64,000 nucleotides of DNA from NCBI GenBank assembly GCA_965112155.1, contig OZ218098.1; one strand, 5' to 3'. This DNA is from Podarcis liolepis. Its lineage: Eukaryota. The translations under genes were made by a program, and so were the position numbers. Below the pieces are notes generated by a model, which saw only the letters and a list, made by a program, of their open reading frames with translations, did no database searches and was not told the DNA's origin. Position 1 is the stretch's first letter, and every line of letters begins with the position of its first letter. Positions 7,000-29,274 of this stretch are shown here, one piece after another.

Positions 7000-7680
7000 A
7001 GGGCACCACATTGGCTACCCTTGCATGTAATAGCCGTAAGTGAAAAGCACCAAGTAGGCAAAATCAGCTTTGGCTTATGGCAAATGGGGTCACTGTACTT
7101 CAGTGGTTCTGTTCCTACCTGCAAAGTTTGTTTCAGGGAGTAGCACTAGGGAACTGCCCATCAGCCCCCTGGCACTTATGCGATGGGATGCCACAGGCTG
7201 CCAACCTGGCCCCTCCCATGCTGCTTAACATTGATATGAAGCTGTTGGAAGCTGGGGATTTGGAATGAAGTTTGATTAGCACATCCAAGTCAGGTGTGGC
7301 TTGCAATCCCAAGGCCAGCATTTAAATGCTGCAGTAGACTGGATGACATTTAGATAACTTAAATGATCGTGGCAAGACAGAGTCCTTGTGGGTGAGTGCT
7401 TCATCTGGGGTGTAGGCCAGTTACCAGTTCTGGATGTGGTTACATTCTGGCTTGAAGAACAGGCACATAGATTGAAAGTACTCCCTAGGTCATCATTGGA
7501 ACTAGAGGCTCAAGTGGCCTCAGTACCTAGGAGTGCTTTTTACCATAAATGGTATACTAGTCATGCCTGAATAAGGACAGCATGGCCACAGCACTCTATG
7601 CTTTGGCAACCTCAACACTAGATTACTGCTATGTGCTCTATGTGGGGCTGCCCTTTGCCTCAGTTCGGAAGCTACTGGGC
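7000..7680 (+). mobile_element. Old degraded L2 RT fragment
   Basis: GVTVLQWFCSYL..APWHLCDGMPQAANLAPPMLLNIDMKLL resembles L2 RT QWF.SYL...GVPQGS.L.P.LFNIYM. Confidence 0.75.
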
Positions 7681-7754
7681 TGTCATGAGCATTACGGAGA
7701 AAGAAAGGATGGGATACAAAATGAGATAAAATATTAATAATAATTGTTAGATTA

Positions 7755-8072
7755 CAGTGGTGCACCGCAAGACGAATGCCTCGCAAGACGGAAAACTCGC
7801 TAGACGAAAGAGTTTTCCGTTTTGGAGGTGCTTCGCAAAAACGAATTTCCTATGGGCTTGCTTCGCAAGACGACAATGTCTTGCGAGTTCCTGCTGGTTC
7901 CCCCCCTTTTTTCTAAGCCGCTAAGCCGCTTATCAGCTGATCCGATCAGCAGATAAGCCGCTAAAAGCCGCTAATCCGCTAATCCGTCAATGGGCTTGCT
8001 TCGCAAGACAAAAAAACCGCTAGACGAAGAGAATCACAGAACGGAATTTTTTCGTCTTGCGAGGCACCACTG
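7755..8072. mobile_element. Tc1/mariner-type MITE with TA TSD
   Basis: Terminal inverted repeats CAGTGGTGCACCGCAAGACGAA / TTCGTCTTGCGAGGCACCACTG flanked by TA; internal CGCAAGACG repeats. Confidence 0.88.
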
Positions 8073-9666
8073 TACTATCATGGTGAAGAAATGAGCAGAA
8101 CTGAGCACCTGCAAAATTAGAAAAAGTAAGAATGCCAACATGAAATGAGGGAAATGTAAAAGAAAGAAAATCAACTTCAGTTTAGAACTTGAACATGAAA
8201 GTAACCAAAACGGAGTGAAAAAGTGGACATGCAAACCTAAATGAAATAGAAACCCGTTAATGCCACATTATTTTAAAGGTGGAACATTCCACTCTGGAAA
8301 AGTTTACTTTCTGAGTTTTATCAAATGTGAAGAATGTCACTGACCTAGAAATACTGTTTCGTTATTTTCTTGAATGCCCCTGTCAACCCCCCACCTGCAT
8401 GCTTTTTAATTAAAACACAAAATGGATGGGGGGAAATGCTTCCCTCACACTTGACAATTTGAAGGCATGCCAACCACAGAAGAAAAAAGGGAAGAGTACA
8501 GTACACAGTTCTAGTGCCAGGGGGACAAATTAAGGAAGTATTAAGGTGATAATATTTGTATTATATGCTGATTGACTGTCTTAGGACAACACACACCAAA
8601 GCCAATCTGAGAAACAGTGGAAAGAGAAACCTTTTTCTGCATCAAAAGAGCAAAAAAATATAGACAGCTACAGCAGCCTTTAGGATCCTAAAGCTCTGGC
8701 AGATGACAGAGTTATAGCTGACAAGTATTCCACTATGAAACAGAACCTACACACCACAAGACAAACTTAGAAAAACAATCACTACTGCAATCTGACTAAA
8801 CGTGTACTGCATAACTAAACCACCACAAGGCTGACACTGGCAATTTGCATCTCAGAGCCCAGTGCCCAATATAGCCGAAATCAAAAGTAGTAACCATCTC
8901 AGTACTACCAAAATCTTGAACTGGTTTCACTTGTAAAAGACAACATATAACAAGCAGGTACACAGACACATGTTAAACAATGATGGAAAGTTTTAGAAAG
9001 GTTTTGTTACTGTAACCTGTGGCACACCTTCCACGTTAAGCAGTGGAACTAGACGTCGTGAGATAGGAAAGGTCTCACTTTAATCAAGGATCTGGCAGGC
9101 TTCCATACGTAAATGGAAAGCAGCAATTTGTCATCAGCAGATGGGTAGATTTTATGTTTGCACCATCATGATGCCATGAAACAGAAAGAAACTTGCATCC
9201 AGAAACCTATGTTGTGTGCAGTTTTGGGTTTAATTCTCCATACCAATTCCATTTAATTGCACAGCAGTGCTTTCTAGTGAACCAGAGAAAAAGGAAATCT
9301 TCTGAAACAAAGGGGGGATATTTAAAAAAAAGGGGGGGGAGAGATAATAAAGTAAACAAATTGCCATCCTGTTGCATCCAGTATTAAAACAAACCACTGG
9401 TAAGGATTAGGTCCTATACATTAACCAGGACATTCAATCAGCATTCAAACACTTCTATCTAAATCCAAATTTTAGTGAGTTTTTCTTAATTTAAGCTTAA
9501 TTGGTCAGAACTTACCCTCAAAAGCAAGATCTTATTGCTTTTGCTTACATTAAAAACTACAGGTGCTTATGAGCCAAGAACAACCCTGAATACACAACAG
9601 AATGATAACTTAACTGCTATGCCAATCTAGGTTTGGTTTTTTTCTTACACTGTGTACTGTACTTAC

Positions 9667-9828
9667 CCCATTCCATTCTACGCTCATACTCACTTCCTCT
9701 CCTCCGTCAGGGCCACTCTCATACTTTACCACGTCGACATTGAGGCTCTCGCGGCTTCGCCTTCTCTCTATACTTTCTGGGTCATTGAGCACTTCAGCAA
9801 CTCTCTGTTTGTGAACATTATCAAGACC
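9667..9828 (-). CDS. KLC1: KLC1 coding exon 12 (GLDNVHKQRVAEVLNDPESIERRRSRESLNVDVVKYESGPDGGEE[VSMSVEWNG]) with two alternative donors (exon end 9694 or 9667)
   Basis: Donors GAA|GTGAGT and GGG|GTAAGT lie 27 nt apart, both phase 0. Confidence 0.95.
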
Positions 9829-10885
9829 CTGTGAGCCAAGTAAAGGGGAAACAGACATTTTACTTTGCACCAAGTAGTTCAGTGCCATGAGTGAGAAGAG
9901 CAATTATCATCAAGTTACTACGGAATCTACAAAACATTACCGAATAAATAAGCACCCATTAGCTGCATATGAAGCATAACCATGAAGCACATATTACAGA
10001 ATTACAAAGGTAAGTTTGAAGAGAAAACATTGTTTGCTTATTATCTACACCAACAAATTAACGTTTTAGTAAAAGTAACATGCTTTGACTAATTTGTCTG
10101 AAGGTGATAATTTCGCCAACAACCCACTATATTCTAACTAGGCTTGTCAATTCCGTTAACTTAGGCCAGGTTCAAGGGGCTGCATATGGAATTCTCTGCA
10201 AAACATTTGTGTTTTAGTTTCCCACCCTTCCACTGCAGCATACATGCACAGGTTCATACACACAGTCCAAATATGTTCCTGAAGTTCAGGAGACCCTTTG
10301 AAACAGGACAAAGGGCTGCAGTTAGAAAGGAAACATTGTAAGCCCCTCTCCTCAAGTGGAAGTGCTTTCTGCTGGCATGCACAACTCCTTAGATCCTGGC
10401 CTTAACTTACTTCCCCAGTTTAAAAATCCTCCACTAAAGGCAGTTTCAGGATTTCTGTCCTTGTTCCTAGTAGCATCCTTTTTGATGTCAACCCAAACTG
10501 CACACGATACTGCAAATGTGGCCGTATCAAATATTTTATATACAAGTTATTGTTACTCTCCACACATTTTCTTAAAAAGTGAGAATATTTTTTTTAACAT
10601 AATATCATTAATGGGAACATTTAAAAAAAGATCAGAGTAAAAGAATGAGTTATCTAGTTACATATTTCTGAGTGTTCATACTAAACTTCAGGGTGGTACC
10701 CGCCCCCCATGGAAGTTGGGATTTCCCCTCCGGATTATTTTGCCAATATCTGCTTCTGAAAAACAATAAAGGCAGTGCAGACAATCTCCTAACCATGACA
10801 TTTCCTCCTTTTTCATCTGCGTAAGTCCACCCTCATCTACAGTATGTTTTAACCAGGAGATAGCAGTGCCACAGGATCAGTGTTA

Positions 10886-11176
<291 letters not shown>

Positions 11177-12806
11177 TTAGATTCCAACAGGAGACCATTG
11201 CTTCCCAAACTTGAAACAATTCTGTCTAATAGTACAGCAGAATATTCCATTAAAAGCCAACGCTCGTCATAAATTTATAATGGGCACTTACTGCTCACAA
11301 AGAGTTCTGAATAGGTCTGCAAATGCATAAGCAGTTATTTACTAGAAAGACATTTTGCCAGGGTACCATGTATTGCTGCAGCTATTGCTGTCCATTATAT
11401 AACTAGGCTAGTTCTGAAGCAGTAACCTTGACAAAGACACAGATCACATATTCCGAGTGTCCTCCTTATCAGCCCTGCTCAATTTTCCAGTCCCAAAGGA
11501 TTACAAAAAAATGCCTGCTATAAAACACTTAAGTCCGATGCACGATTCTCTGATTCTTTTCTCTTGCTGCCTGAATGCAAGAGAGAACACCCTCACATAT
11601 GCTACTATTTAAAAAGCTATTATATAGCACAGATAAATTAGCAGAAACAGCAATTGCAGCAATATTGCAGCAATGAAAGGACTAAGATTACTGAAACTGT
11701 GACAAGTGACAATTCCTCTGCTGCCCCTTCCCACTCCCCGAAGGAGGACAAGTCCATCCATGCATCAATATACCTTTTAAAATATTATTTATTATTTTAT
11801 TAAATTTGTATCTGTAGCTCTCAGGGCGGTTCACACAATACACAGAATAAAAACAAGAACAAAAGGGAAGCAAAACCCTCGGGAGGTTGTGGACGCTCTT
11901 TCCTTGGATGTTTTTAAGGAGAGGTTGGAGGGCCATCTGTCATAGATGCTTTATCCCAAGTTTCCGGCATTTCAGGGAGTTGGAATAGATGATCTTTGGG
12001 GTCCCCTTCCCACTCTACAATTCTATGATTCTATGAAAACAATAATCCCCCCCTCCCCACCAACACATTTAAAAGGGTACAGGATGCTAATCAGCCATAG
12101 GCTCCAACCCAAAATAAATCCAAGACCCTGAGTCCATTTTGAAGTTGGGAAATGTAGAAATGGTGGGCTTAATTTGTAGCCAGTGATTTCAAACCACCAC
12201 CTCTATAAAAGGACGGCCAGTAGGGTTTTTAGCAGCCACTGAGCATCTCTCCTGACATGTTAGGAAGCTCCAGCCTTCCAGCCAATACTGCACAATATTC
12301 CAGTCACTTTATGCTTCTGTTTCCAAATTTTATCTTTCTAGGTATTTACACAAAGCCAAGTCTCTCTAGGTAGTATTGCAACACCAGTTTCTTTGGATGA
12401 CTGTTTCAGTCACAATCAAGACATTTCCACCTGGAGAAAAACCTGTTCTGGGCATTCTCCTAACACCCCCAGCGAATTTGGAGGGGTGGGAACCTTGTTG
12501 CACTGGCCAAAGTCCTTGTGCAAGCTTCCACTAGTGAGACCAGTTAACTGAATCTGGTTAATTGACCAGTTAATTGAATTAAGGTTATATTCAATTAACT
12601 TTTACTCGGAGTAGACTCATGTAAATTTATGACCACTAATTCTGCTGAGTCTACTGTGCATAAAAGTTAGTTGAACACAACCTTTATTAAGTTTCTCCAT
12701 AAGGACATTTACAATTATCTTCACTATGGAGGTTTCCAGAATTCAACACACTGTCAACAACATTATTATTTTAATACTTTAAATGTTTTTAGGAAAGTGT
12801 ACCTAC

Positions 12807-12874
12807 CTATCAACTTTGCAAGCTTTATACCAGCCTCCATATTCACCAAAAGTAGTGCCATCTTTTTGCTTTCC
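12807..12874 (-). CDS. KLC1: KLC1 coding exon 10 (GKQKDGTTFGEYGGWYKACKVD)
   Basis: 68 nt, AG/GT flanks, follows an 82-nt intron. Confidence 0.95.
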
Positions 12875-12956
12875 CTAAATTGCAAACAGTGTGTTAAATT
12901 GTTATCTTTAACGCTATAAGGACAAAAATAAATTTCTGCTTCAGGTATCCTCTTAC

Positions 12957-13006
12957 TTTGCATTCTTCTCTTTCTTCAGCATGCATCCAGATTGGTTTGT
13001 TTTCAT
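12957..13006 (-). CDS. KLC1: KLC1 coding exon 9 (ENKPIWMHAEEREECK)
   Basis: 50 nt, within ORF 12894-13175, AG/GT flanks. Confidence 0.95.
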
Positions 13007-13845
13007 CTATGTAAAAATAAGGTAAGGGATACTGTGTGAAATAAAATGACCACATTTGGCCAGACCAGCATTGTGAAAGAATGCTCACCAACACAATCCT
13101 ATATCCACCTATGAGGGAGGAAGCCCCACTGAACTGCTCAGTAGACATGTATAGGATTGTGCTGTAAAGAAACATTATAGAAAGCTACAGAGATGTCCAC
13201 CCCCAATGTTCCCAGTTCTAGGACACTTTATTCACTGATCAGAAGCCAGTCACAGTGCTATTGTATATAAATGATGCAAACCTTGAGTTTATCAAATAAG
13301 CTAAACAGAGCAAAGGGTCATCTTATCACACTGTGACAGAACAAAGACATATTACAAGTAGATGTCTTGTTTTTTTCACAGCCTAAGGATAGGAAAAAAA
13401 GAATACCTAGAAATCAGAGTTACAAAATGGTTGCAACTGCTCTTTCAAAGCAGCTTTGATGTTAACCGAATTGCAAGCAGCACATGCAAACAGAAGCTTA
13501 GTTGCCTGCTAGAACATACGGAGACGTCACTTTTATCATAATGACAACTTTGACACTTCAAGCAAGCTGCTTACATAATTAACTCATCACAAGGAAGCCA
13601 GTGCTCTGCAACTACTGCTTGCAAATTATATTCTGCCAAGTGTATTAACAATCCAACCAGTTCCTTAAATCGCCCAATTAAAATGTATCATTCTTCAAGT
13701 CAGTCTTTTCGGCATTATTATTATCATGATAACCTAAAACCCTCTGAAGAATTCTGCCAAGACAAGAGCAACTGCAAGCATGCCCAATAGGATTAGACTT
13801 TGCTTGGACTAAAGAGCAAGTGCTCTCCCCACCTTCCCCCTAGGG

Positions 13846-14398
13846 CAGGCATAGGCAACCTCGGCCCTCCAGATGTTTTGGGACTACAACTCCCATCATC
13901 CCTAACAGTGAAGGGCCTCAGAAATAGAAATTCCAGCATGCTGTTATCAAAGTAAGTGTTACAAGACGGGCAAGACCATAAGCAAGCAGACAAACAAAGC
14001 AACTGTTACAAGACAGGGAAGGCCGTAGGAGGCAGACAAACAAAGAATGAGTAAATTAAGAAGTGTTAACCTTCAAAAGGAGAAACATGGAATGTTAGAG
14101 CCTGATTGGATAAGAATGTAAAGTCTCACTCTCTGTTGTTGTTGTATAGTCTATAAAAAGTGGGCGCACCCTGATTGGGGTGTGCAGATTGCGAGATTAT
14201 CGCGCTGCACCTTTGCTTTGCATATGCATTTCAAATAAACCCTGTTATAACCTGCAAGGATGTTTGCCGCTTTGTGTGAATCTGTGCTTCTGGGACCCTA
14301 TAGCAGATATGGAACAAGTCCAACAACAGGACCAGTGGTCAGGGATGATGGGAGTTGTAGCCCCAAAACATTTGGAGGGCTGAGGTTGCCTATGCCTG
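13846..14398. mobile_element. hAT-type palindromic MITE (8-bp TSD CCCTAGGG) interrupted by a solo LTR
   Basis: Inverted repeats CAGGCATAGGCAACCTC / GAGGTTGCCTATGCCTG; TSD at 13838-13845 and 14399-14406. Confidence 0.88.
13909..14325 (+). mobile_element. Solo LTR (ERV-like), 417 bp, 4-bp TSD ACAG
   Basis: TG...CA ends; ATTGG at ~14105, TATAAAA at ~14152, AATAAA at ~14234; TSD at 13905-13908 and 14326-14329. Confidence 0.85.
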
Positions 14399-15127
14399 CC
14401 CTAGGGGCTCAGTTTGCATACCATATTAAACCATGGCTTAGCACTTGGTGCACAAACTGGAATATGCGTGTGCTGGGATGCACCCAAAGAAAGCCTTGAG
14501 TTTGCATACTCCCTCCTCTTCTTCCCCCACTCCTGACCCACAGGTGGTAGGAGGAGGACCTCTGCAGAACTTAATTTCACTTTCAATATATCCTGGCTTA
14601 TCCTTAACATACAAACTACAAGTTGTGGTTTAAAACAAAATCGAAGCAGTAAACAAGCAAGCTTCAGCCATGAGTTATGCATCTGGTTTGTTCAGAAACT
14701 GACTAGAGTTTGTTTCTAACCAAAATGTCTGGTTAATACTTTAACAAGAAGCAAGGATTTGTGAGAAATGAAATTATATTTTGCAGAAGTTCTTCTGCCA
14801 GCAGGAAAGGACAAGGGAAAGAGGGAGCTCAAGGCTTTGCTTAGGCTTTTGCCAGCTTCTGCACATAGAATTAAACAATGATTTAGCATTACATGCTTAC
14901 TCAATTTATCATTATCAAAAACTGCTTGTGGAAATTCCTCTCAATTTTAAAGATGGTTTGCCATACAGCATGGAGGGGAAAAACACAGAGAAACAATGGC
15001 TAAACAACTTGTCAAAGCACTTCCTGTAACAATTTCTAAAATGATTTCTCAGTATGTTCTGCCATTATTTAAAAGCAGCAACAACCCGTGACCTCTTACA
15101 ATTAACAAAGGACTTGAGTCTCTCCTA

Positions 15128-15310
<183 letters not shown>

Positions 15311-15735
15311 TCAGATTTGAAAGAAGTTCAGAAACATGATATCTGAAGGCAACTTGCTTAGCACATTACAAAGGGTTGGATCCAAATGTGTTTTTCTGCC
15401 TGCATAACAGTCATTGGAAGCTAACTTAAACCATTGGTCTTATCTAACTCAATATTGTCTATGCTAATTGGGCAGCACTACAGAAGGTCTATGTTACATG
15501 TCACACTAGAGCATGGTGTGAAAATAGTGACACTAGATCCAAAGTTGTACTTCATCTGGGCAAGCAGAAGCGCAGTAATTGTAAGACACAGTATAATGTA
15601 TCACTGCTGAAAGTCTTCCTCTAGCACATGTGCAAGTCTTAGTGTGGCAGTCCTGGCACTAGGAACTATTTTCATTTTGCTCGGTGTTTTGGATCCAAGC
15701 CCATGTTCTCAGCAAATGAGAAATACAGTAGCTCA

Positions 15736-15945
<210 letters not shown>

Positions 15946-16679
15946 CTAGAAATAAAGGAACACTAGGTTACCACTGTATCACCTGCTTTTTAAATATAAA
16001 CTTTTTTTAAAAAGCAGTCAGTCATATTTACACTAGCATTGGCTCAACTAGACTCAAGCCCCTATTTATACTCCACCTCTGGAAACATTATATTAAACAA
16101 ATTTAGCCAGAATTATTTACATATTATACAGGGGTATGGGAAATATTCCAGATCATAACTTTCCAGTTATAAATCCTTCAAACCTCCACAAGAAACTTCA
16201 CAAAGAACTTCTGCCTACACTATGGGAGGATTACTACTTTCCACACTAATTCCTTTCCTTTTCTGTCATTCACCCCACTTCTACATGTGCAGACTTCTGA
16301 AAAGTTAGGGTGCTCCCCAATGCCTACTTTTCATCTGTTTTGCATTCCAAATCATATGCACAAGGTAGATTTCCAAAACATATTGCTGTTTTTGAAGACA
16401 GAGAAATAGCATTCAAAGCCAATAGTATGTAGGGCAGGAAAAAGTGGCTCAGAACTGTGATGTGTGACAGCTGTCATGACACTGCTGGAATAAAATATCC
16501 CATCTGAGATGTTCCTTGATACCTGATCTCCCTGCCTGGTAACAAATATGGGGTTTCCTGTCTTTTGAGAGCAGGTTCTGACACATCTTTAAAATACAGT
16601 GAATTGATTTCTAAAAACTTAATAGATCATTGCAATAAAATCCTAAATGTGCACAACTGTACGCACAATCTCTATTTTA

Positions 16680-16895
<216 letters not shown>

Positions 16896-17628
16896 CTACT
16901 AACATACCTGCTGAAATTATCTGGAGAAAAATTAAGCAGCTCCTAGAGCATTCATTTATTTGTAATTCAGATGTTTAAATACTTGTGAAACTAAGAAACA
17001 TAAAATGTGTCTTAACTAGCACAGTGATGCCCAACCTTTGGCGGCCTACAAATAGTAGCAAATTGTTGTTGGATGGTACATATTTACTAGGTTGTTAAGT
17101 AGAACCAAGTAGTAAGATCCTGCAAGCATGGAATAAGTCATGCTAAAGGACTAGGTCTATGTTTTGAAAGTACTGGCCCAGAGCTAAAACCTTAACTGGG
17201 ACAAGCATGTGGACAATAGATTAGTTATAACATACTGGCTGGGAAGCACTGGGCTAGGAATATTAGGAAATGCACAATTTTGCTCGATGAAGCAGAATAC
17301 TATATTCAAAAGATATATATTAGAAAGTGACATAGTTTCATATTATAGAAAGGACATCTGTAATTATCAATGGAGAGTATTTAATAAATGGCTTACACTG
17401 AACAAAAGTTTTTACTATTGCTCCAAAAAAGCAATCCAAAAACACATTTGAAATATTTCAGAATTTCAGGTAAATCCATCATGTAAATGATTCAGAATCA
17501 GACAAGTGTGTAAGAAAGTAATTTAAGTGGACCAATGTTGAAAGAGTTTTGTGCTTAATTATTAAAAGTGCAAGACATTATATTGAGAGTTACCTACCTG
17601 AATGAAGTTAACGATAAACCAGGGCTTA

Positions 17629-17841
<213 letters not shown>

Positions 17842-18329
17842 TTAGAGAAGTCATGATTAAATACCATATCTCATGAACATATTATTTAAGAATTCAGTCA
17901 GGAAAATCAGCAAGAATTGGATTCAGTATCTTAAGTATATGAAACTATCAGAATCCAGTGCAGATTCTGCTCTTTTCATGTCTCAACCCATGAAGCTCCT
18001 ATTATTCAACAGTTACAGCACAGTGGCTAGGTACTAGAACAGAGCAACAAATCTAGAGAACAGACCATGCTGATAATCTGAGGCTGCCCTCTACATCTCT
18101 ATAAAGGACAACAACTGCAGGATACTATGGACAGTATACCCAGCTCTCCTCCCAATCTAAGGTCACCAGATGCACCAACCAGCACCAAAACAAAATGCAG
18201 ATTCAGTTCCTAAGCCACTAGTAGCAAACTACTGCTAAAGTAAGAATGTCTTCATCCCAACTCAATGTATCTAGGAATATTATTCAAGTTGCATGACTGT
18301 CTCCCTAAAAAGGCCATGTCCTCAAACTA

Positions 18330-18671
<342 letters not shown>

Positions 18672-19381
18672 TTAAAATTAATATGTAACTGGCATGAATG
18701 AATTGAACTTCTTTAAGACTACACACTCAAATGTTTTAACTGTCAAAACTATGATTGAGTTCCATGAGGTTATTATACCTAATCATTCCACTCTTGTGGT
18801 TTCTTTTTTAAACACACACATTACTTTGAGCATACTCTGGCACATGTTTTGTTAGCAAGTTCTATTTCTTTTATTCATTACACTTGAAAGTCTCTGGCTT
18901 CCCAGGAGAATGAGATTGGATATAGCCAAACTCATGGAAAAGCAGGAAATCAAAAGTTCAGCCACCATGGTTGCTGATGCAAGTTCCCCCCCCCCCCTCT
19001 CATCTAGCAAGCCAATGTAACTTGGGGAAGAGCCCAAACCTATAACCATGGGGGAGACTTGTTCCTTGCATGCTTAGCTTCAGAACTGGATCCTAGCCTC
19101 AGTATAATTTGAGAGCAAAGTATGATTTCCCCAGTTCAAACATGATAAACCGTGGTTATCACTAACTAGGAAAAAATCTTCACAATGAAGTACAATTTCT
19201 GATTGCCCATCAGAAGTTTCAAGTCTATCATTTTTATTGTTTCTGGCAAGTCAGCTGCCAGGCTTCAATACTGCAGCTACTCTTTTATGCTGTGCACTGT
19301 GCACTAATGACTTAAAGAAGCAGCTAAACTTCCACTAGTCCCCACTCACTCTGTATAATGTATAAAGTTACATTCACTTAC

Positions 19382-19460
19382 TCCCTTGTCCTTGGTCATC
19401 TTCATCATTGGGGAATAAATCATCCAGTGGCTCTTTGGTAGAATCTGTGTCTTTATCCTC
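19382..19460 (-). CDS. KLC1: KLC1 coding exon 3 (EDKDTDSTKEPLDDLFPNDEDDQGQG), contains the LFP autoinhibitory motif
   Basis: 79 nt, AG/GT flanks, manual translation. Confidence 0.96.
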
Positions 19461-19736
19461 CTAGACAAATCCCAAGAAACAACAAGCAGTTAGAACCACT
19501 GAATCAATATGGATATGCGCATCATGCATATCCACAAATTGCAAAAGGCACCCTTGTCTCCCCACCCTACTTCTCAAACTAATACCATTACTGAAAAGTG
19601 TATCATCTACTAAGCATGATATTTAGAAGTGCAAAAAGAGAACTCTAAGTTTATGACCAGATGATCTTGAGAAAAGGGTAACAAAGGTGATCACAGGGCT
19701 GGACAACTCTCCTATGAGGAAAGGTCCCAACATTTA

Positions 19737-20039
<303 letters not shown>

Positions 20040-20231
20040 CTAGAAAGGACCAGAAATTACAAGTATTATTCCTCTTGTCTTGCAATATTTGAACATATAT
20101 GTGGGTTAGCATCAACTGCATCGCTGCTTTACAAATCCAACATTTGAGATTTTAATTGTTAACATTGTTAAAAAACTGTATCAAAGCAAGATAACACTTT
20201 GACACCAGACTAAACAGAAATGGCTTTTCAC

Positions 20232-20492
20232 CTGTGCTTCACTGAGTCCAAGTTCCAGCATTTCCAGAGACTTGCGAATCATGTTTGATTTTTCTTCCAC
20301 CAAATTTGTTTCGTCATCTTTCTTCAAACACTTCAGTGTCTCCAGTAAACTCTGTAAGATGGAATTGTGCTCATTCTTCAAAGCTTCTAGCCCTTGAATC
20401 ACTTGCTTAGTCTTTGAAATAATTTCATCTTGAGTGAGTTTCTCCAACTTGTCTTCCTTTAGATACACCATTGTGGACATGTTGTCATACAT
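20232..20492 (-). CDS. KLC1: Kinesin light chain 1, coding exon 1 (MYDNMSTMVYLKEDKLEKL...LGLSEAQ)
   Basis: Translation matches the KLC1 N-terminus; acceptor AG at 20495-20494 with one UTR base (20493); donor CAG|GTGAAA; 261 nt. Confidence 0.97.
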
Positions 20493-22128
20493 TCTAAGAA
20501 AACACAGAAATGGTAACTTTAGTTTAAAGCCAAACAACATATTTTACAATTCTTATTGGTCTTAATTGAAAACTGATGCAGCAGACCAAAGCATGCCAAA
20601 ATGGCATAAAACATATTGGTATGCATACTCTAGATTTTGAATGTAGGTGTGTCTACAATAACTCCTGTGAAATTTCCTATTCAAAACAAACATTTTCCAC
20701 AATACAAAGCAGTGCTCCAATATTTTGTATCTTGTATACAGCTACAGATTCGTGCAATAAAATATTGTCAATACATTTGCAGTAAATCTTACTATCACAA
20801 AAAGGCTATGCAGTCAACAATATTTTAATTTCTAAAAGGTTTGGGTAAGCTTTGCCGGCCAGCAAGATACATATATTTTAGTAGATGAGCCTCAGGGTCC
20901 CTTTCAAATCTACAATTATATGATTTATGAATTATGAGTTATGTAGCAGCCCATCAATAAATATTCACTGGGCAGCGTACAATAAAACAGTATTAAAAAT
21001 ACAGGATATATAATTTAAATATTAAGACAGTACAAAAACTTCCTTACAATAGGGACAGCATAATTTACAATCCATATTTTAAACAATATTAAAATATTAT
21101 CCCTGGGCCATATTATTAATAATAAAAAATAAATTAACAATATTCAACTAAGTCATCACACTAGTGGAAGCCAGTGCAATAGCCACAACATGCCCTCCCC
21201 AAATCTGCCCTGGAGAGTGAGCAGAATCCCCAGAACAGCAAGGGCAAGGAAGGAGAGACTGTGCTGTCAAGCAAGCAGAAACGCTTGAGCTGATGGACTG
21301 ATCTCCCCAGCATTACACTGAATACGGCCCCATGGTCTCAAAGCTTTTGAATTCTGATATCCTTCCTACACACACACATGGACCAGAAAGCACTTAACAT
21401 CTGTCTGTTTCAGTATTGATTTGTGTGAAATATCCATTTATTAATCCTGTTTTGCAGGCATACATTGTCACCCAACCCAAAGGGATGGGAAATTTTAAAA
21501 ATGACAAGAATATTGAAATGGCTGAGTAAGGGAAACTAATGAAAGACAGGTAAAAGGGATTTTTCCTGTTATTTTATAATATAGCAAACCAGTGCATTCA
21601 GCTCTAAAAGCTGCTGACAGAAGCACTTCTAAATGACTTCCATGGGTCAAAAGCAGTTTACTGCTCTCTCAATAACCTGTAGAGCCTGCTTGGGCACTAT
21701 TCATTTAACCAGTTCTTCCATAGATTTACAATTTCAGAGAGGTATTCAAATTTCCATTGAAGACATGTTTAGGAGGGAGGGAACCCAGTAAGTATATGGT
21801 TATCAGGAGAAATAATAATAATCATGGACCATAAGGGATTATCTCAGAACAGTAAAAAAGAGCCAGCACCTTTATGCTCCTCCTCACTCAGGACAGAGGT
21901 AGATGAAACTATAGTCTCCTGCCCACATGCAAGATGAATCACATTAAAACAATTGAAGTAAACATTAAAGCAGCAGATACCGCGTGGCTTCCAATGTTGT
22001 CCAATTCCCTGATGGAAGAAAGGGGAGAGGAGCAGTTTCTAGCAATTCCCCCTGCTCCCCCTCCATAAATCTCATTTGGAGGACTGAAGGGACCCTGTGC
22101 AACAGAAATTATTTTGCATCAGCTAGAG

Positions 22129-24419: not shown

Positions 24420-24950
24420 GTTAGTTAGCAGAAGACAATATCAGAGTTGAGCTATTGGAGAGTTACAGCGCCTGCTGTGGCAGTAGAGACCAAAACGAAA
24501 AATACAGGATCTGTTGCAGCTGAGGCAGATGAAAGTGTTTGGTTGTGCTGACGCAAGTGTACCATGGTGTTTCTTCTTCCAACGGTCATTCCTCCTCAGG
24601 TCACTGCTGTGGATATACAACCTGTTTGTCTGTCTCCAGGCACTGTGGTCGTCTGCAAGGGATTTCCACACCACAGGATTAATGTTGCCAGCCTTCATGT
24701 CAAGTTTGCGGACATTTTTGTAATGAGGAGTTGGTCTAACAATGGGCCCGGTGCCTGAAGCAAGCTCTCCACAGAGCATGTCCTTGGGGATCCTGCCATC
24801 TTTTATTCCGTGGACATTACCAACCTAGCGTAGATGTTGCTGAGACAGGAGTGCAAAGATGGTGAGAATGTGGGCTTGGGAGAGCACATCTTTGTTTAAG
24901 ATGCTCTCCTGCCATGTGAATCCCAAAATCTTCCTGACATGTGTAGAAGA
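24420..24950 (-). mobile_element. Degraded non-BovB RTE-clade LINE 3' part with terminal C2H2-like knuckle
   Basis: DGRIPKDMLCGELASG...LDMKAGNINPVVWKSLADDHSAWRQ...FICLSCNRSC..RFGLYCHSRRC. Confidence 0.8.
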
Positions 24951-25699
24951 CTACGGTTATCACAAGGACTGATGCTGGCAATTGTCCCTTTAATGCCCCA
25001 GCATAAGGCTTAACATGCATGGACTTAGCTTTGTTTGCTATTTGTAACCTGTCCCTTCCAGAGTTAATATGGATCTTTGTCAACAGCACAGCGTTTATTC
25101 AGTAGAAATTAGCAAATGTCACAAGGCTTGTAAAGTATGATAAACAATGCACTAGCTGGAAGAATCAAAGGCTGGTTGTCTGTAACATATAAGCTGAGTT
25201 TCTCACACAACTGCTTTTAGTTTGAAGAACGTAGCTGCTTGGGATCTAGAGCAGTATTCCCTTTTCCTCCCAGGAATGCATAAAGAAGGTAAAGCCCAGT
25301 GACATATAACTCATATGTGTATTATGAACACATGAATTAGCCTTGTCAGCATAGTGAAACAATACATAATAGGGAGCCAGACAACTGGCAAAACCACAAC
25401 TCAGCTGCTGAAACTAAGATGAGGAACTTAAGAGATAGACCCAGAACTAACAGAGATGTTTCAACCCGGCTGTAAGATGCCATGCAGGCTATTGCTTGGT
25501 AGCCTTACGCTTAACTGTTTGTAGTCTTATGCCTTATTTAGTTTTGTGAGGGTTTAGTTAGCTTATTGTATAATTTATACAATTATTATGCTTTTTTCAG
25601 CCTAGCTATCACAAACCTTGTTTGTGATTTTACTTGCTGTACATGAATAAAATTGATAACAAGCACACTTTTGGGTGAAGACTGTTTCCAAATCCACAA

Positions 25700-28080
25700 A
25701 GAACATGAGTCTCCTCTATTTCATCTGCTACATGAGACTGGTACCAAGGCATCATGATCTGTGTACTTGAAGATTCCGAGAGATAGGAATCCTGATCCCC
25801 ATCAAATCCCTCTGTTGTGCACTTTGATTTTCAGTTTTCTAGCTGTGGACTGGACAACAGTGTCTTGCTTTGTGTAGCTTGGGTCCAATTCCATAAATAA
25901 AATTGTCTACAATATCTTCTTTTGAATGACTTGCATGGCAGCACAGTTCTTCCATATGTTCCTATAATTTCACTCATAGGAGAACCACGTTGATTGTACA
26001 CAACTATGAACTTCTGCAGCCTTGCTTCATTAACTAGCTTCAATTTACATGGTTTTAAGCTTTTGTTACCTCATTCCAAATCCAATCACTTTAAAGAAGA
26101 AAGCATGGCTTGTACATTCTCATTTCCTTCCTGAACCTTGAAGGCTGAATCTTCCCTCGCTTAAAAAGGCATCCAGTGAAGCAAAGAAATCCAGATACGG
26201 ATTTGCACATGGTGATCATAAATGAGCTAGCTATCACACATCTATGTAGTACTTCAAACTACTCTTTGATTGCAAACCTACTTCCATCCAAACATTTGCT
26301 TTCAGAATTTCCTAGAAGAATGAGTAACATAGCCATGTCATAGGTGCACGTAATAATGTAATTTAGTGAAGTACATGACATTGCAAGGTAATAAATTAAG
26401 TCAATTATATATCTTCGTCTTGTTTCTGGTCAGTCATTGCCAGTTCAGACTCCACTAGCATACACATGGAAAGAAGGAACATTCCATCAACTCATGTGCA
26501 ATCTATGATAGATAGCTGTCGACTATGGATTCTACTTTTAAGTGAAAACTGTCAGTTTAAAACATGGTTGCATCTATGTGACCAAATCAGAGGTACTAAT
26601 ATCAGGGGATATACCTGTAACTCTTTTTTGTAGTGATACAGGTATTGTCACCTTAAATATACAGTATTTTCTTATTTTTCTTCTGACTGTTGTAAAAGAT
26701 TACACCTTGTAATGGCTGGTTTGAAATGTAATAGATTCTCACAGCAATGAAGTTGTCATAAGCTTTATTTCCCTTGTGGAACATATTCAACAGGAAATCA
26801 GCTGTAGGGGATGGTACAGCTTTCTTGTAGCCATTGTCTCTTGAGACAGATGGATGCCAACAACCATGCTGAACAATGAGAGTTTGATGTATGCTTCAAA
26901 GGGATACAAACTTTCTTCCATCTTTCTTTGATCTTTATCATGAAGATAAACTGTGCACGGTCCTTCCTCATGTTAGTTGCAGTTCAGCAGTAGTATCTTC
27001 CTCTTTGTGGCACCCCAGCTCTTCAAAATTTGGTTTTACTCAAAATGCTTGATCTTAGTAAATGACTTTCTGTCCAGCTTTGTCCAATAGATATGGGTTG
27101 GTAAATGCTAACATTTCTGTTAGATTACTTGCAGCATTAGCATTGCCTATCTGTTCCAATCTCATGTCAACAGCAGATCTTGGGATTTTTTTCCCTTTTC
27201 AACATATGCACAGAGCTGCTTGCCAGGGTGAGGCTCTTACATTTTCAGCATGTTGTCTTGCAGTCAACACAGGCCATCTTGCATAGGTTGGCTGACTGAA
27301 GAAAAAGAACAAGCTGAACACCTGACCAAGGCAATGTACAAGTAGACCATGTCTGTCAATGTGTTTGCTACAGGAAAATGTGTGAAAGAGGCAAATGAGT
27401 CAAATGCTGGTAAACTAGTATGATGCCATTTCACCATGCTCACCTGACTTAAGTTTTCCTTGATAATTCCACGTATGCACTGATGAAATGTCTTATATCA
27501 TCAGTCAACTATTTCCTTCTGAAGGCATGCCTCAAACAGCCAAACTCCTCAGGTTATTTCAGAAGGACAAATGTTACACAGACTCATCTCTCAGCACTGG
27601 TAATTCCTACAGCACATATACTAGCAACATCATAAACGTTGCATCATACAATGTTGATTATTTACCCCAACTGTTCTCATTGTGCACAGAATTAAACTAC
27701 ATCAGCATATTTATTTAAGTACAGTTTGTGTAGCTATTTAACAACACTATGGCCCAAATCCATCAGAACACAGAGTCATCAAAAGATGCATCCAGCCAAT
27801 TTACTGGGGTCCAAATGAGCATGTCCACAGATGGGAATGCACATCTTTATCAATAGGGTGCATGCAATCCTGCTTCTACATGCAGCTCTCCTTTCTTGGA
27901 ACAAGGTGTAAATGGCTGGTGCAATAAATGAAAAATACTTAACAGGTGCCATACATCTGTATCCCAATGAAGCCAGTGAGCTGTCTATTGGGTGATATCC
28001 AACAGTCACTGAGATCAACAAAAATAAATTTGCAGCTAGTTTCAGTTGGACTTAGTGGAGATCACCCATTGTCAGCACAA
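25700..28080 (-). mobile_element. Decayed DNA-transposon coding fossil, Academ-like (transposase plus XPG-type nuclease), with many stops, frameshifts and deletions
   Basis: Ordered minus-strand motifs from manual translation: GEHGEMASY..LFFFFSQPTYARW (27444-27274), RSAVDMRLEQIGNANAASNLTEMLAFTN (~27180-27100), TADFLLN, YPLILVPL/FGHIDATM (~26611-26565), VDGMFLL, VWMEVG (~26294), MCKSVSGFLCFTGC..GKIQP (26210-26140), VNEARLQKF..LPCKS (26035-25925), FDGDQ. Confidence 0.7.
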
Positions 28081-29274
28081 ATAACACTTTCAAGATTAAG
28101 AATTCCCACGTTCAGAGCTATTCCCCTTCAAGCAACCCCCCCCCCCCGCCTTAAACAAATAATTAATCTTGAGTCAGTTATCAACATATCAACATGATAT
28201 TTATTTTGTTATTCAGCATAAAAAGTAGACATTTTTAGGTCAATGCCACTGAACACAATACTATAAAACCATAAGTATATAGAAATACTGACACTACCCT
28301 TGAAATACAGATTTTTTTAAAGCTGCAAGTGTACAGTTTTCCTTTACTCAAATCAAAACTATTGAATGTTCTTACTTTGGTAATATTATTATTATGGAAT
28401 ACTGAGAATTCATCAAGGGCAGATAATCACAGAGTGCCAACAGCAAGGTCATGAGCCACATGGATGGCAATTTGGAACACATATGAAGACTGATGGCAAA
28501 ATAGTTTTATAGCCCTAAAGGTTAGTGAGGTAAGACAAAAAATCATGAGAATCGTTCAAATTCTCATAAAAACATTAAAACTGGCAGAGATGGACATTCC
28601 AAAGCAGACTGGAGGGCACAGGGGGCTGCAGAGGGAGAGGGATTTTTATCACACAACTTTGGGTGCACCATATGAATCTAAAACAATTTCAAAACCTCTT
28701 ACACACTTACTTCAGCTCAGAGATCATGACTTGCTGAAATCAGAGTTTCCAGTCACAGCCAAACCGAGAAACTATGATTTTAATCTTGGTTTACTAATCA
28801 GCATATGATAATTTCCTATGCTAGTTAGTAGTCAGTAATCTAACCTCTTCATTTCAATGTAACAGAAAACTATGGTTTAAAATTGCCATAATCTCTAAAG
28901 TAAAGTCAGTATATGAAGGAAGATTTCTTGCCATGTTGCGCTTATGCAATTTTATTGGACTAAATTATATTGGTAAAAAATATGTTTGAAAAAATGTATA
29001 GAGGCAACATGATAAATTAGTCACTTCTCAGCAATACAAACACAAAGGTTAGTTTTACGCAAAATACTTCAGTAATTTCAGGTACCATACCTATTGATAC
29101 CCCAGTTATTTTGGAAACCAGATGCTGCGTTGAGTTACTCAACAAATGTTAGCGTATTGGAAAATAAAGTGAATGGCGGGAAAAAGCTGGCAAGTGTCTA
29201 TTTTGTACTGGGAATGGAAGTACTGAAGTAAAAAAGTACAAAATTTACTTCCTTGCATTTATGTATATAGCATA

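Follow-up and report, generated by a model that had tools for sequence, protein, structure and literature searches.

In the 64,000-nucleotide stretch of Podarcis liolepis DNA analysed here (GenBank assembly GCA_965112155.1, contig OZ218098.1; hereafter the window), the minus strand upstream of the coding start of the gene KLC1 carries heavily decayed coding sequence homologous to a family of large animal proteins that join a transposase region to a FEN1/XPG-type nuclease. This stretch is very probably what remains, no longer functional, of a single inserted copy of an autonomous DNA transposon from the Academ superfamily, AcademX lineage, and it has the same orientation as KLC1, in whose long 5' intron or upstream region it lies. 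An earlier inspection of the letters (the sequence-only reading) had proposed a hidden Academ-like transposase with an XPG nuclease at 25700-28080, and both its observation and its interpretation turned out to be essentially right, although standard searches performed piece by piece see nothing. This gives a squamate example, securely identified, of an Academ-type protein fossil; the superfamily is rarely annotated in amniotes, one published fossil of amniote age was found, and squamate repeat libraries could gain an entry.

Homology to a family of large animal proteins

Between 25.5 and 28.3 kb of the window neither strand holds a long open reading frame (ORF). The largest, and the only one of any size, encodes 70 amino acids at 25831-26043 on the minus strand, as the sequence-only reading had stated, and the peptides quoted there are indeed present, spread over all three minus-strand frames and interrupted by stops. 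The proteins to which these peptides had been likened were retrieved with the motif [FL]HA[FL]TGCD[TS], written as a degenerate DNA pattern and scanned on public metagenome contigs, which gave at least 120 loci, nearly all with the motif in ORFs of one family and six of them with ORFs of 1,520-1,580 amino acids. The motifs of the proposed parallel are those of a real and abundant family of 'uncharacterised' animal proteins. Its consensus runs, in order, through the blocks PWFFALDHTNYARW, IDQALEQ.NA..KG.GG..GL, P.SL...G.LRK..KS.L, IIDG, VVFD.Y and HEEADTR, and then DTDV.VL, ELW..FG.G...RY, FHA.TGCD..S.F.G.GKK, VNEAR..LF and LPPT...L..H..RA.YQ..W. Two members used as database queries brought up hundreds of relatives. 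All of these are filed as hypothetical or uncharacterised proteins, a number of them as 'Tesmin/TSO1-like CXC domain-containing', and they come from hosts that include hagfish, amphioxus, cnidarians (with Nematostella vectensis, P0175), the annelid Capitella teleta, molluscs, echinoderms, a sponge and insects. The same kind of motif scan on viral contigs gave a single match, in a phage glycosyltransferase, which is attributed to chance.

Since frameshifts break the signal of the fossil into short pieces, a local profile-to-DNA aligner was written for the purpose, a dynamic programme that tolerates frameshifts, stops and affine gaps, for which the rest of the window, cut into 2.5-kb chunks and read on both strands, served as the null (n=49). 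With a broad profile of 86 family ORFs taken from metagenomes and with penalties fixed a priori, the target chunk scored 57.5 bits against 21.6 ± 2.7 (maximum 30.7) for the other chunks and 21.6 ± 2.5 (maximum 29.4) for 60 dinucleotide shuffles of the target, the reversed target reaching only 21.1 bits. The transposase-side part by itself gave 43.3 bits (null 20.0 ± 2.6), and the whole chain with cheap gap extension 98.0 bits (null 27.8 ± 5.4, maximum 42.0). When each relative was scored singly, one clade, which had surfaced among the distant matches of a database search with the family member L007, proved much nearer to the lizard copy than the other relatives, its members scoring 133-184 bits against 37 ± 6 on the reversed lizard sequence. 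A profile of 19 members of this clade (1,428 positions) gave 250.1 bits on the target, against 26.3 ± 5.5 (maximum 42.6) on the other chunks (n=49). Proteins of this clade are also found by plain tblastn, P0210 matching 27465-26977 at E 2.4e-15 (31% identity over 175 amino acids) and P0216 matching 27465-26746 at E 2e-11, with second, colinear matches at 26345-26109; pairwise tblastn with the marine invertebrate members collected first gives weak but colinear matches. The colinear translated match to XPG-containing, transposon-type proteins that the sequence-only reading had anticipated therefore exists.

It might be supposed that the resemblance arose by chance, the motifs having been picked by eye over three frames of AT-rich intronic DNA, and the behaviour of the single stop-free pieces would agree with this: ten of them had no match in Pfam even at E 10, a word-indexed protein search with a 79-residue piece gave no candidates, and the ESM Atlas returned nothing usable for a 47-residue piece. 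A phmmer search of the 79-residue piece against 1.84 billion representatives gave four matches, all of them tandem-repeat proteins summing weak repeats and none a family member, and these were rejected. When the stop-free pieces were searched by hmmsearch with a long family profile, two pieces from the region ranked first, with E values of 0.39 and 4.9. Against chance stand the colinear clade-profile alignment of 250 bits, compared with a null maximum of 43, the tblastn E value of 2.4e-15, and the agreement of the shuffle, reversed-sequence and other-chunk controls. The tblastn match and the clade-profile score already refute the chance reading, whose probability is negligible, and the homology of the lizard stretch to the family of ~1,500-residue animal proteins is as good as certain.

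Anatomy of the fossil

The clade-profile alignment matches 532 codons, 190 of them (36%) with the residue of the clade consensus, and its best path requires at least 21 frameshifts and passes 7 stops; together with the deleted motifs described below, this bears out the heavy decay noted at the outset. Of the 13 quoted motifs, twelve coincide, in the right order, with conserved blocks of the clade consensus (Table 1); the remaining one, 'YDVA' near 27630, lies outside the alignment and finds no support. The interval first proposed, 25700-28080, does contain the fossil and is somewhat too wide, because the aligned span is 27502-25785. The assignment of VNEARLQKF also proved right: a profile of more distant clades had set it on a neighbouring motif, a placement rejected in favour of that of the clade profile, which puts it on VDEAR.

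Table 1. Features of the fossil in the window; motifs of the lizard copy are followed, in brackets, by their counterparts in the clade consensus.
Feature	Position	Strand	Motifs and remarks
Entire detectable fossil	25785-27502	-	Clade-profile positions 645-1378 of 1,428, colinear; tblastn
Helical insertion domain remnant, transposase region	27274-27502	-	GEHGEMASY..., LFFFFSQPTYARW (LFFALNQQNYARW)
Invariant D/E pair block (LEQ block)	27130-27174	-	AVDMRLEQIGNANAA (PIDLTLEQTINADAA); located after the helical insertion in the model
Transposase-nuclease linker	26660-27129	-	LTNxxxxRxW, EELGCHKEEDTTAEL, ESLYPF, ADFLLNMFHKG
In-frame insertion of 33 nucleotides (11 codons) relative to the family profile	26835-26867	-	Overlaps the high-copy stretch 26831-26864
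5' nuclease domain, N-terminal half	26307-26611	-	YPLILVPL (YPLTPVPLSL); VDGMFLL (IIDGFFLL), first acidic motif kept; yDMAMLLILLGN (LLILLGN against VLVILLGN), DTD remnant
Nuclease core, second half, and helix-3-turn-helix region	26142-26299	-	NVWMEVG (KIWMELG); SGFLCFTGC (GFLCFTGC against GLHALTGC); LFKRGKIQP (KRGKIQP against RKGKIRP)
C-terminal helical region of the nuclease module	25785-26070	-	VNEARLQKF (VDEARLEIF); LPCKS; WTQA; FDGDQ (WFDGDQ, continuing as WFDGDQLP)

Transposase and nuclease regions are both present in the lizard copy, colinear and on the same strand. The transposase region is represented by its C-terminal third: the helical insertion is kept from its middle onwards, followed by the LEQ block, which from its position in the model most likely provides the third catalytic residue of the Asp-Asp-Glu (DDE) triad, and both catalytic aspartates are gone. 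The nuclease part has lost profile positions 1015-1061 (with the motif VFD), 1098-1148 (EEAD) and 1228-1232 (five residues that include the aspartate of GCD), so that three of the five conserved acidic motifs are deleted, while DTD now reads DMA; the complete set of acidic metal-binding motifs of a functional FEN1/XPG-like 5' nuclease is therefore wanting in the lizard copy. The 70-residue ORF sits in the C-terminal helical region of the nuclease. Upstream to 35 kb and downstream to 23 kb, a search for other parts of the element gave scores within the null; with nothing homologous detected upstream of 27502, the lizard copy lacks the first ~644 profile positions.

The in-frame insertion in the linker coincides with a stretch (26831-26867) to which thousands of contigs align in each of the four sequencing runs (depth ~35,000); it is therefore a scrap of a high-copy repeat. 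The other copies of this stretch run into a GC-rich consensus on one side and into AT-rich tails on the other, and the abundant repeat behind the scrap is perhaps the 3' end of a long or short interspersed nuclear element (LINE or SINE). Elsewhere within the fossil, a moderate rise in depth at 26376-26509 (280 against 38) suggests that a short piece there is repeated at low copy number.

Predicted transposase and nuclease folds of the family

In the relatives, a single ORF of ~1,500 amino acids contains the transposase and nuclease regions both. The C-terminal ~400 residues were modelled from an alignment of 16 sequences with a predicted local distance difference test (pLDDT) score of 91. A profile of the nuclease domain found nothing among PDB sequences and a fold search was used for this reason; Foldseek gave 47 PDB matches at E <= 1e-3 and, among the matches listed, all were PIN-like, helix-3-turn-helix 5' nucleases, namely XRN1/XRN2/Rat1, EXO1, FEN1, Rad2/XPG, and bacterial or plastid flap endonucleases, in keeping with the XPG/PIN nuclease expected by the sequence-only reading. 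Residues D41, D84, E176/D178, D202/D204 and D261 are invariant in the 16 sequences and are taken by us to correspond to the acidic clusters of FEN1-type enzymes through the motifs IDG, VFD, EEAD, DTD and GCD, a correspondence by motif and not by computed superposition. The C-terminal domain of the family thus shares with FEN1, EXO1, XPG (Rad2) and XRN the PIN-like fold with a helix-3-turn-helix and five acidic motifs, and differs from them in sequence (9-17% identity) and in belonging to a transposon protein; in the lizard copy, three acidic motifs of the five are deleted.

The central ~550 residues were modelled with a pLDDT of 87 (model me34e44b0ef38). Foldseek returned nothing significant for this region; VIA-align, run over 48,161 chains, placed the P element transposase first (Z 12.0, 334 residues, root-mean-square deviation 5.2), followed by ISCth4 (9.1), Hermes (8.6), Tn5 (8.0), RAG1 (7.3) and a run of retroviral integrases at ~7. 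On the strength of the model, the region is predicted to be a DDE core of RNase-H-like fold that contains a large helical insertion, and its invariant residues D81 (..VDNIDHN..), D253 (..TFDQPLY..) and D470/E474 (..DQAHEQ..) appear to occupy the sites expected of the DDE triad. In the Drosophila P element transposase (PDB 6p5a), Hermes, RAG1 and Transib, too, a large helical insertion interrupts the RNase-H-like core ahead of the last catalytic residue. Compared with the P element, sequence identity is ~10%, neither a THAP module nor a guanosine triphosphate (GTP)-binding module is seen in the family, and the C-terminal 5' nuclease of the family is not found in P elements. The pairing of a transposase with an XPG-like nuclease is thus borne out by the models of the relatives.

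In intact relatives the protein comprises three modules: an N-terminal Cys/His-rich region; a DDE transposase whose RNase-H-like core is split by a large helical insertion, as in the P element, hAT and RAG1/Transib; and a C-terminal FEN1/XPG-type 5' nuclease with the complete acidic motifs IDG, VFD, EEAD, DTD and GCD. Judging from the known mechanism of its enzyme class, the transposase would cut and paste the element, and the nuclease may process flap or overhang intermediates at the element ends or at the target. The lizard copy, having lost the first ~644 residues with the first two catalytic aspartates as well as three of the five acidic motifs of the nuclease, can neither move nor encode anything, and apparently evolves as neutral intronic DNA that is inherited vertically in this lizard group.

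Probable assignment to the Academ superfamily

The family is assigned to the Academ superfamily with high confidence. The superfamily has been recognised since 2010 (Kapitonov & Jurka 2010, as cited in PMC10045372), and the latter paper, citing Kojima 2020, distinguishes AcademX, which encodes a nuclease and makes target-site duplications (TSDs) of 3-4 bp, from AcademH, which carries a helicase and makes TSDs of 9-10 bp. Curated Academ elements of bivalves have a mean length of 5,565 bp, and Academ ORFs are reported from Capitella teleta (PMC10294476), while the Repbase element Academ-1_NV comes from Nematostella vectensis (PMC9004415); proteins of both these species are members of the family studied here. 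An apparently complete family element was found on a metagenome contig (L056:28-5764), 5,737 bp long, with one ORF of 1,560 amino acids and imperfect terminal inverted repeats of ~56 bp that start (TA)GTRCAGCRGCTTA, so that this relative has both the inverted repeats and the length of about 5.5 kb that characterise Academ. A second copy (L096), of which the right end only is available, loses its similarity within a few bases of the right repeat. AcademX transposase and XPG nuclease are reportedly encoded in one protein. The relatives accordingly resemble AcademX in that a single long protein combines a DDE transposase and an XPG/FEN1-type nuclease, in their size of ~5.5-5.7 kb, in their inverted repeats and hosts (cnidarians, annelids, molluscs, echinoderms, amphioxus, insects), and perhaps in a short, possibly 4-bp, TSD, whereas the lizard copy is a 1.7-kb, 5'-truncated and frameshifted remnant without recognisable ends. 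A further link is provided by DUF6589 (PF20231), which is precomputed on several of the database relatives; according to one study of the rust Puccinia striiformis, pathogenic fungi are enriched in this domain, and it is in Pucciniomycotina that Academ reaches its greatest abundance (PMC5751038).

Several points weigh against this reading. The grounds for the Academ label are architecture, size, host taxa and a Pfam domain of uncharacterised function, and not Repbase or Dfam reference proteins, and DUF6589 matches five of six full-length relatives below the Pfam cut-off (12-21 bits against 27). Both flanks of L056 read TATA, which fits a 4-bp TSD and a 2-bp TA duplication (with TA in the termini) equally well and is ambiguous. 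Around the lizard copy no inverted repeats or TSD are recognisable, just short chance-like pairs; the terminal inverted repeats that the sequence-only reading had in view were looked for around 25.8-27.5 kb and none was convincing, although the absence of recognisable ends is expected of a truncated fossil. The closest relatives found, at 31% identity over 175 amino acids, include insect proteins, and the database searches made recovered no vertebrate relative of the nearest clade; a search of the ESM Atlas with one clade member (P0211) likewise returned no vertebrate taxa. Finally, while the lizard copy is dead by reason of its 21 frameshifts, 7 stops and deleted catalytic motifs, it is apparently neutral as far as rough counts from contigs of very close relatives can tell.

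Some of these points could equally be read to mean that the fossil belongs to the family but the family not to Academ in the Repbase sense, constituting instead a separate, unnamed superfamily or a P-element-like branch that independently gained a FEN1/XPG-type nuclease. The P element transposase is the best structural match of the transposase region (Z 12.0), and no Pfam name applies to these proteins above the cut-offs. Elements of the P superfamily have 8-bp TSDs as well as THAP and GTP-binding domains, and neither domain is among the Pfam matches of the relatives. No other transposon superfamily is known to carry such a nuclease. Within the literature consulted, the nuclease is described solely for AcademX (PMC10045372), and size, host taxa and the possible 4-bp TSD agree with Academ, which makes a separate superfamily unlikely. 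The Academ identity proposed by the sequence-only reading thus fits in architecture, size and hosts, with the qualification that the lizard copy itself keeps just the C-terminal third of the transposase region.

Academ had also been called atypical of amniotes. The superfamily is rarely annotated there, as claimed, yet a fossil of the Academ-1_NV_tp protein has been published near the human gene NDST4 and is of amniote age (Frith 2022, PMC9004415). Like the lizard copy, the NDST4 fossil is an old, degraded Academ-type coding remnant in an amniote that needs frameshift-tolerant protein comparison to be seen; it differs in lying at another locus, in human, and in being shared across amniotes, whereas the lizard fossil is known from close relatives. 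With Academ known since 2010 and an amniote-age human fossil already published, the lizard fossil adds to a known kind.

Position in KLC1, divergence and age

KLC1 lies on the minus strand of the window, with its ATG exon (MYDNMSTMVYLKEDKLEKL...) at 20184-20543 and later exons at 19737-20039 and 18330-18671. Upstream of this exon, at a distance of 5-7 kb, the fossil lies on the KLC1 strand, in sense orientation, and a GC-rich island at 33.6-34.4 kb (67% and 62% G+C), ~13 kb upstream of the ATG exon, likely marks the KLC1 promoter and a non-coding first exon. The location in KLC1 intron 1 given by the sequence-only reading is made probable by the positions of the ATG exon and of the island, as opposed to transcripts, and is to this extent partly shown.

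The fossil stretch was followed in sequencing runs of seven organisms, being represented by 0.95-0.97 of sampled words in one, presumably the source species, and by 0.50-0.75 in the other six, and contigs from four organisms span it at single-copy depth. No other copy at >=85% identity occurs in the contigs examined, and on copy number, too, the fossil is thus single. At least four closely related taxa share the fossil, and among them its divergence per piece is ~0.5-2.5% (about ~1%), the same as in the flanks, and small indels differ among the relatives, including a 9-bp deletion and 1-bp insertions; the comparison of fossil and flanks in contigs of close relatives gave no sign of constraint. 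These observations bear on the suggestion that the fossil has been exapted, part of it working as a regulatory element or alternative exon in the 5' region of KLC1. Its position, on the sense strand of a conserved gene and with the GC-rich putative promoter on one side and the ATG exon on the other, would suit such a role, and many very old protein fossils survive through exaptation (Frith 2022, PMC9004415). Divergence between close relatives no lower than in the flanks and indels segregating within the fossil speak against it, and exaptation is considered highly improbable; the fossil is probably irrelevant to KLC1 biology.

From the density of frameshifts and stops, and with assumed rates of indels and substitutions, the insertion may be guessed to be of the order of 10^8 years old. 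That it dates from a lepidosaur or amniote ancestor, and is orthologous in the KLC1 5' intron of distant reptiles, is unlikely. Were it so, Academ would have a second dated fossil, Palaeozoic or Mesozoic in age, which could mark a vertebrate Academ lineage absent from repeat libraries, and retention through partial exaptation might apply.

Two other features of the surrounding DNA were observed. Just downstream of the fossil, 24500-25035 is a high-copy interspersed repeat with a summed contig depth of 7,000-20,000, against ~38 for single-copy sequence in the run of the source species, and with many joints and loose ends in the contigs; it is probably a SINE or LINE fragment. At 28135-28150 lies a G/C homopolymer (13 G on the minus strand), whose length varies between contigs of different runs.

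Family members annotated as host genes

The 'uncharacterised' animal proteins of ~1,500 amino acids are shown by this analysis to be transposon proteins, some of them annotated as ordinary genes or as Tesmin/TSO1-like CXC proteins. In the sawflies Neodiprion virginianus, N. pinetum and N. lecontei, full-length members of the nearest clade (P0222-P0225), of near-equal length at 1,456-1,548 amino acids, have been given ordinary gene annotations with isoforms ('uncharacterized protein LOC124299714' and others). They represent an Academ-type element that was active recently or else a copy that has been domesticated. In a gene model of Brenthis ino (P0227), an Academ-type protein is combined with a zf-BED finger of hAT type and a hAT dimerisation region; the model is probably a chimeric annotation that spans two transposons. 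One family member (P0158), a hypothetical protein, is filed under a bacterial metagenome-assembled genome (Sedimenticola sp.) and most likely represents eukaryotic host DNA binned into a bacterial genome.

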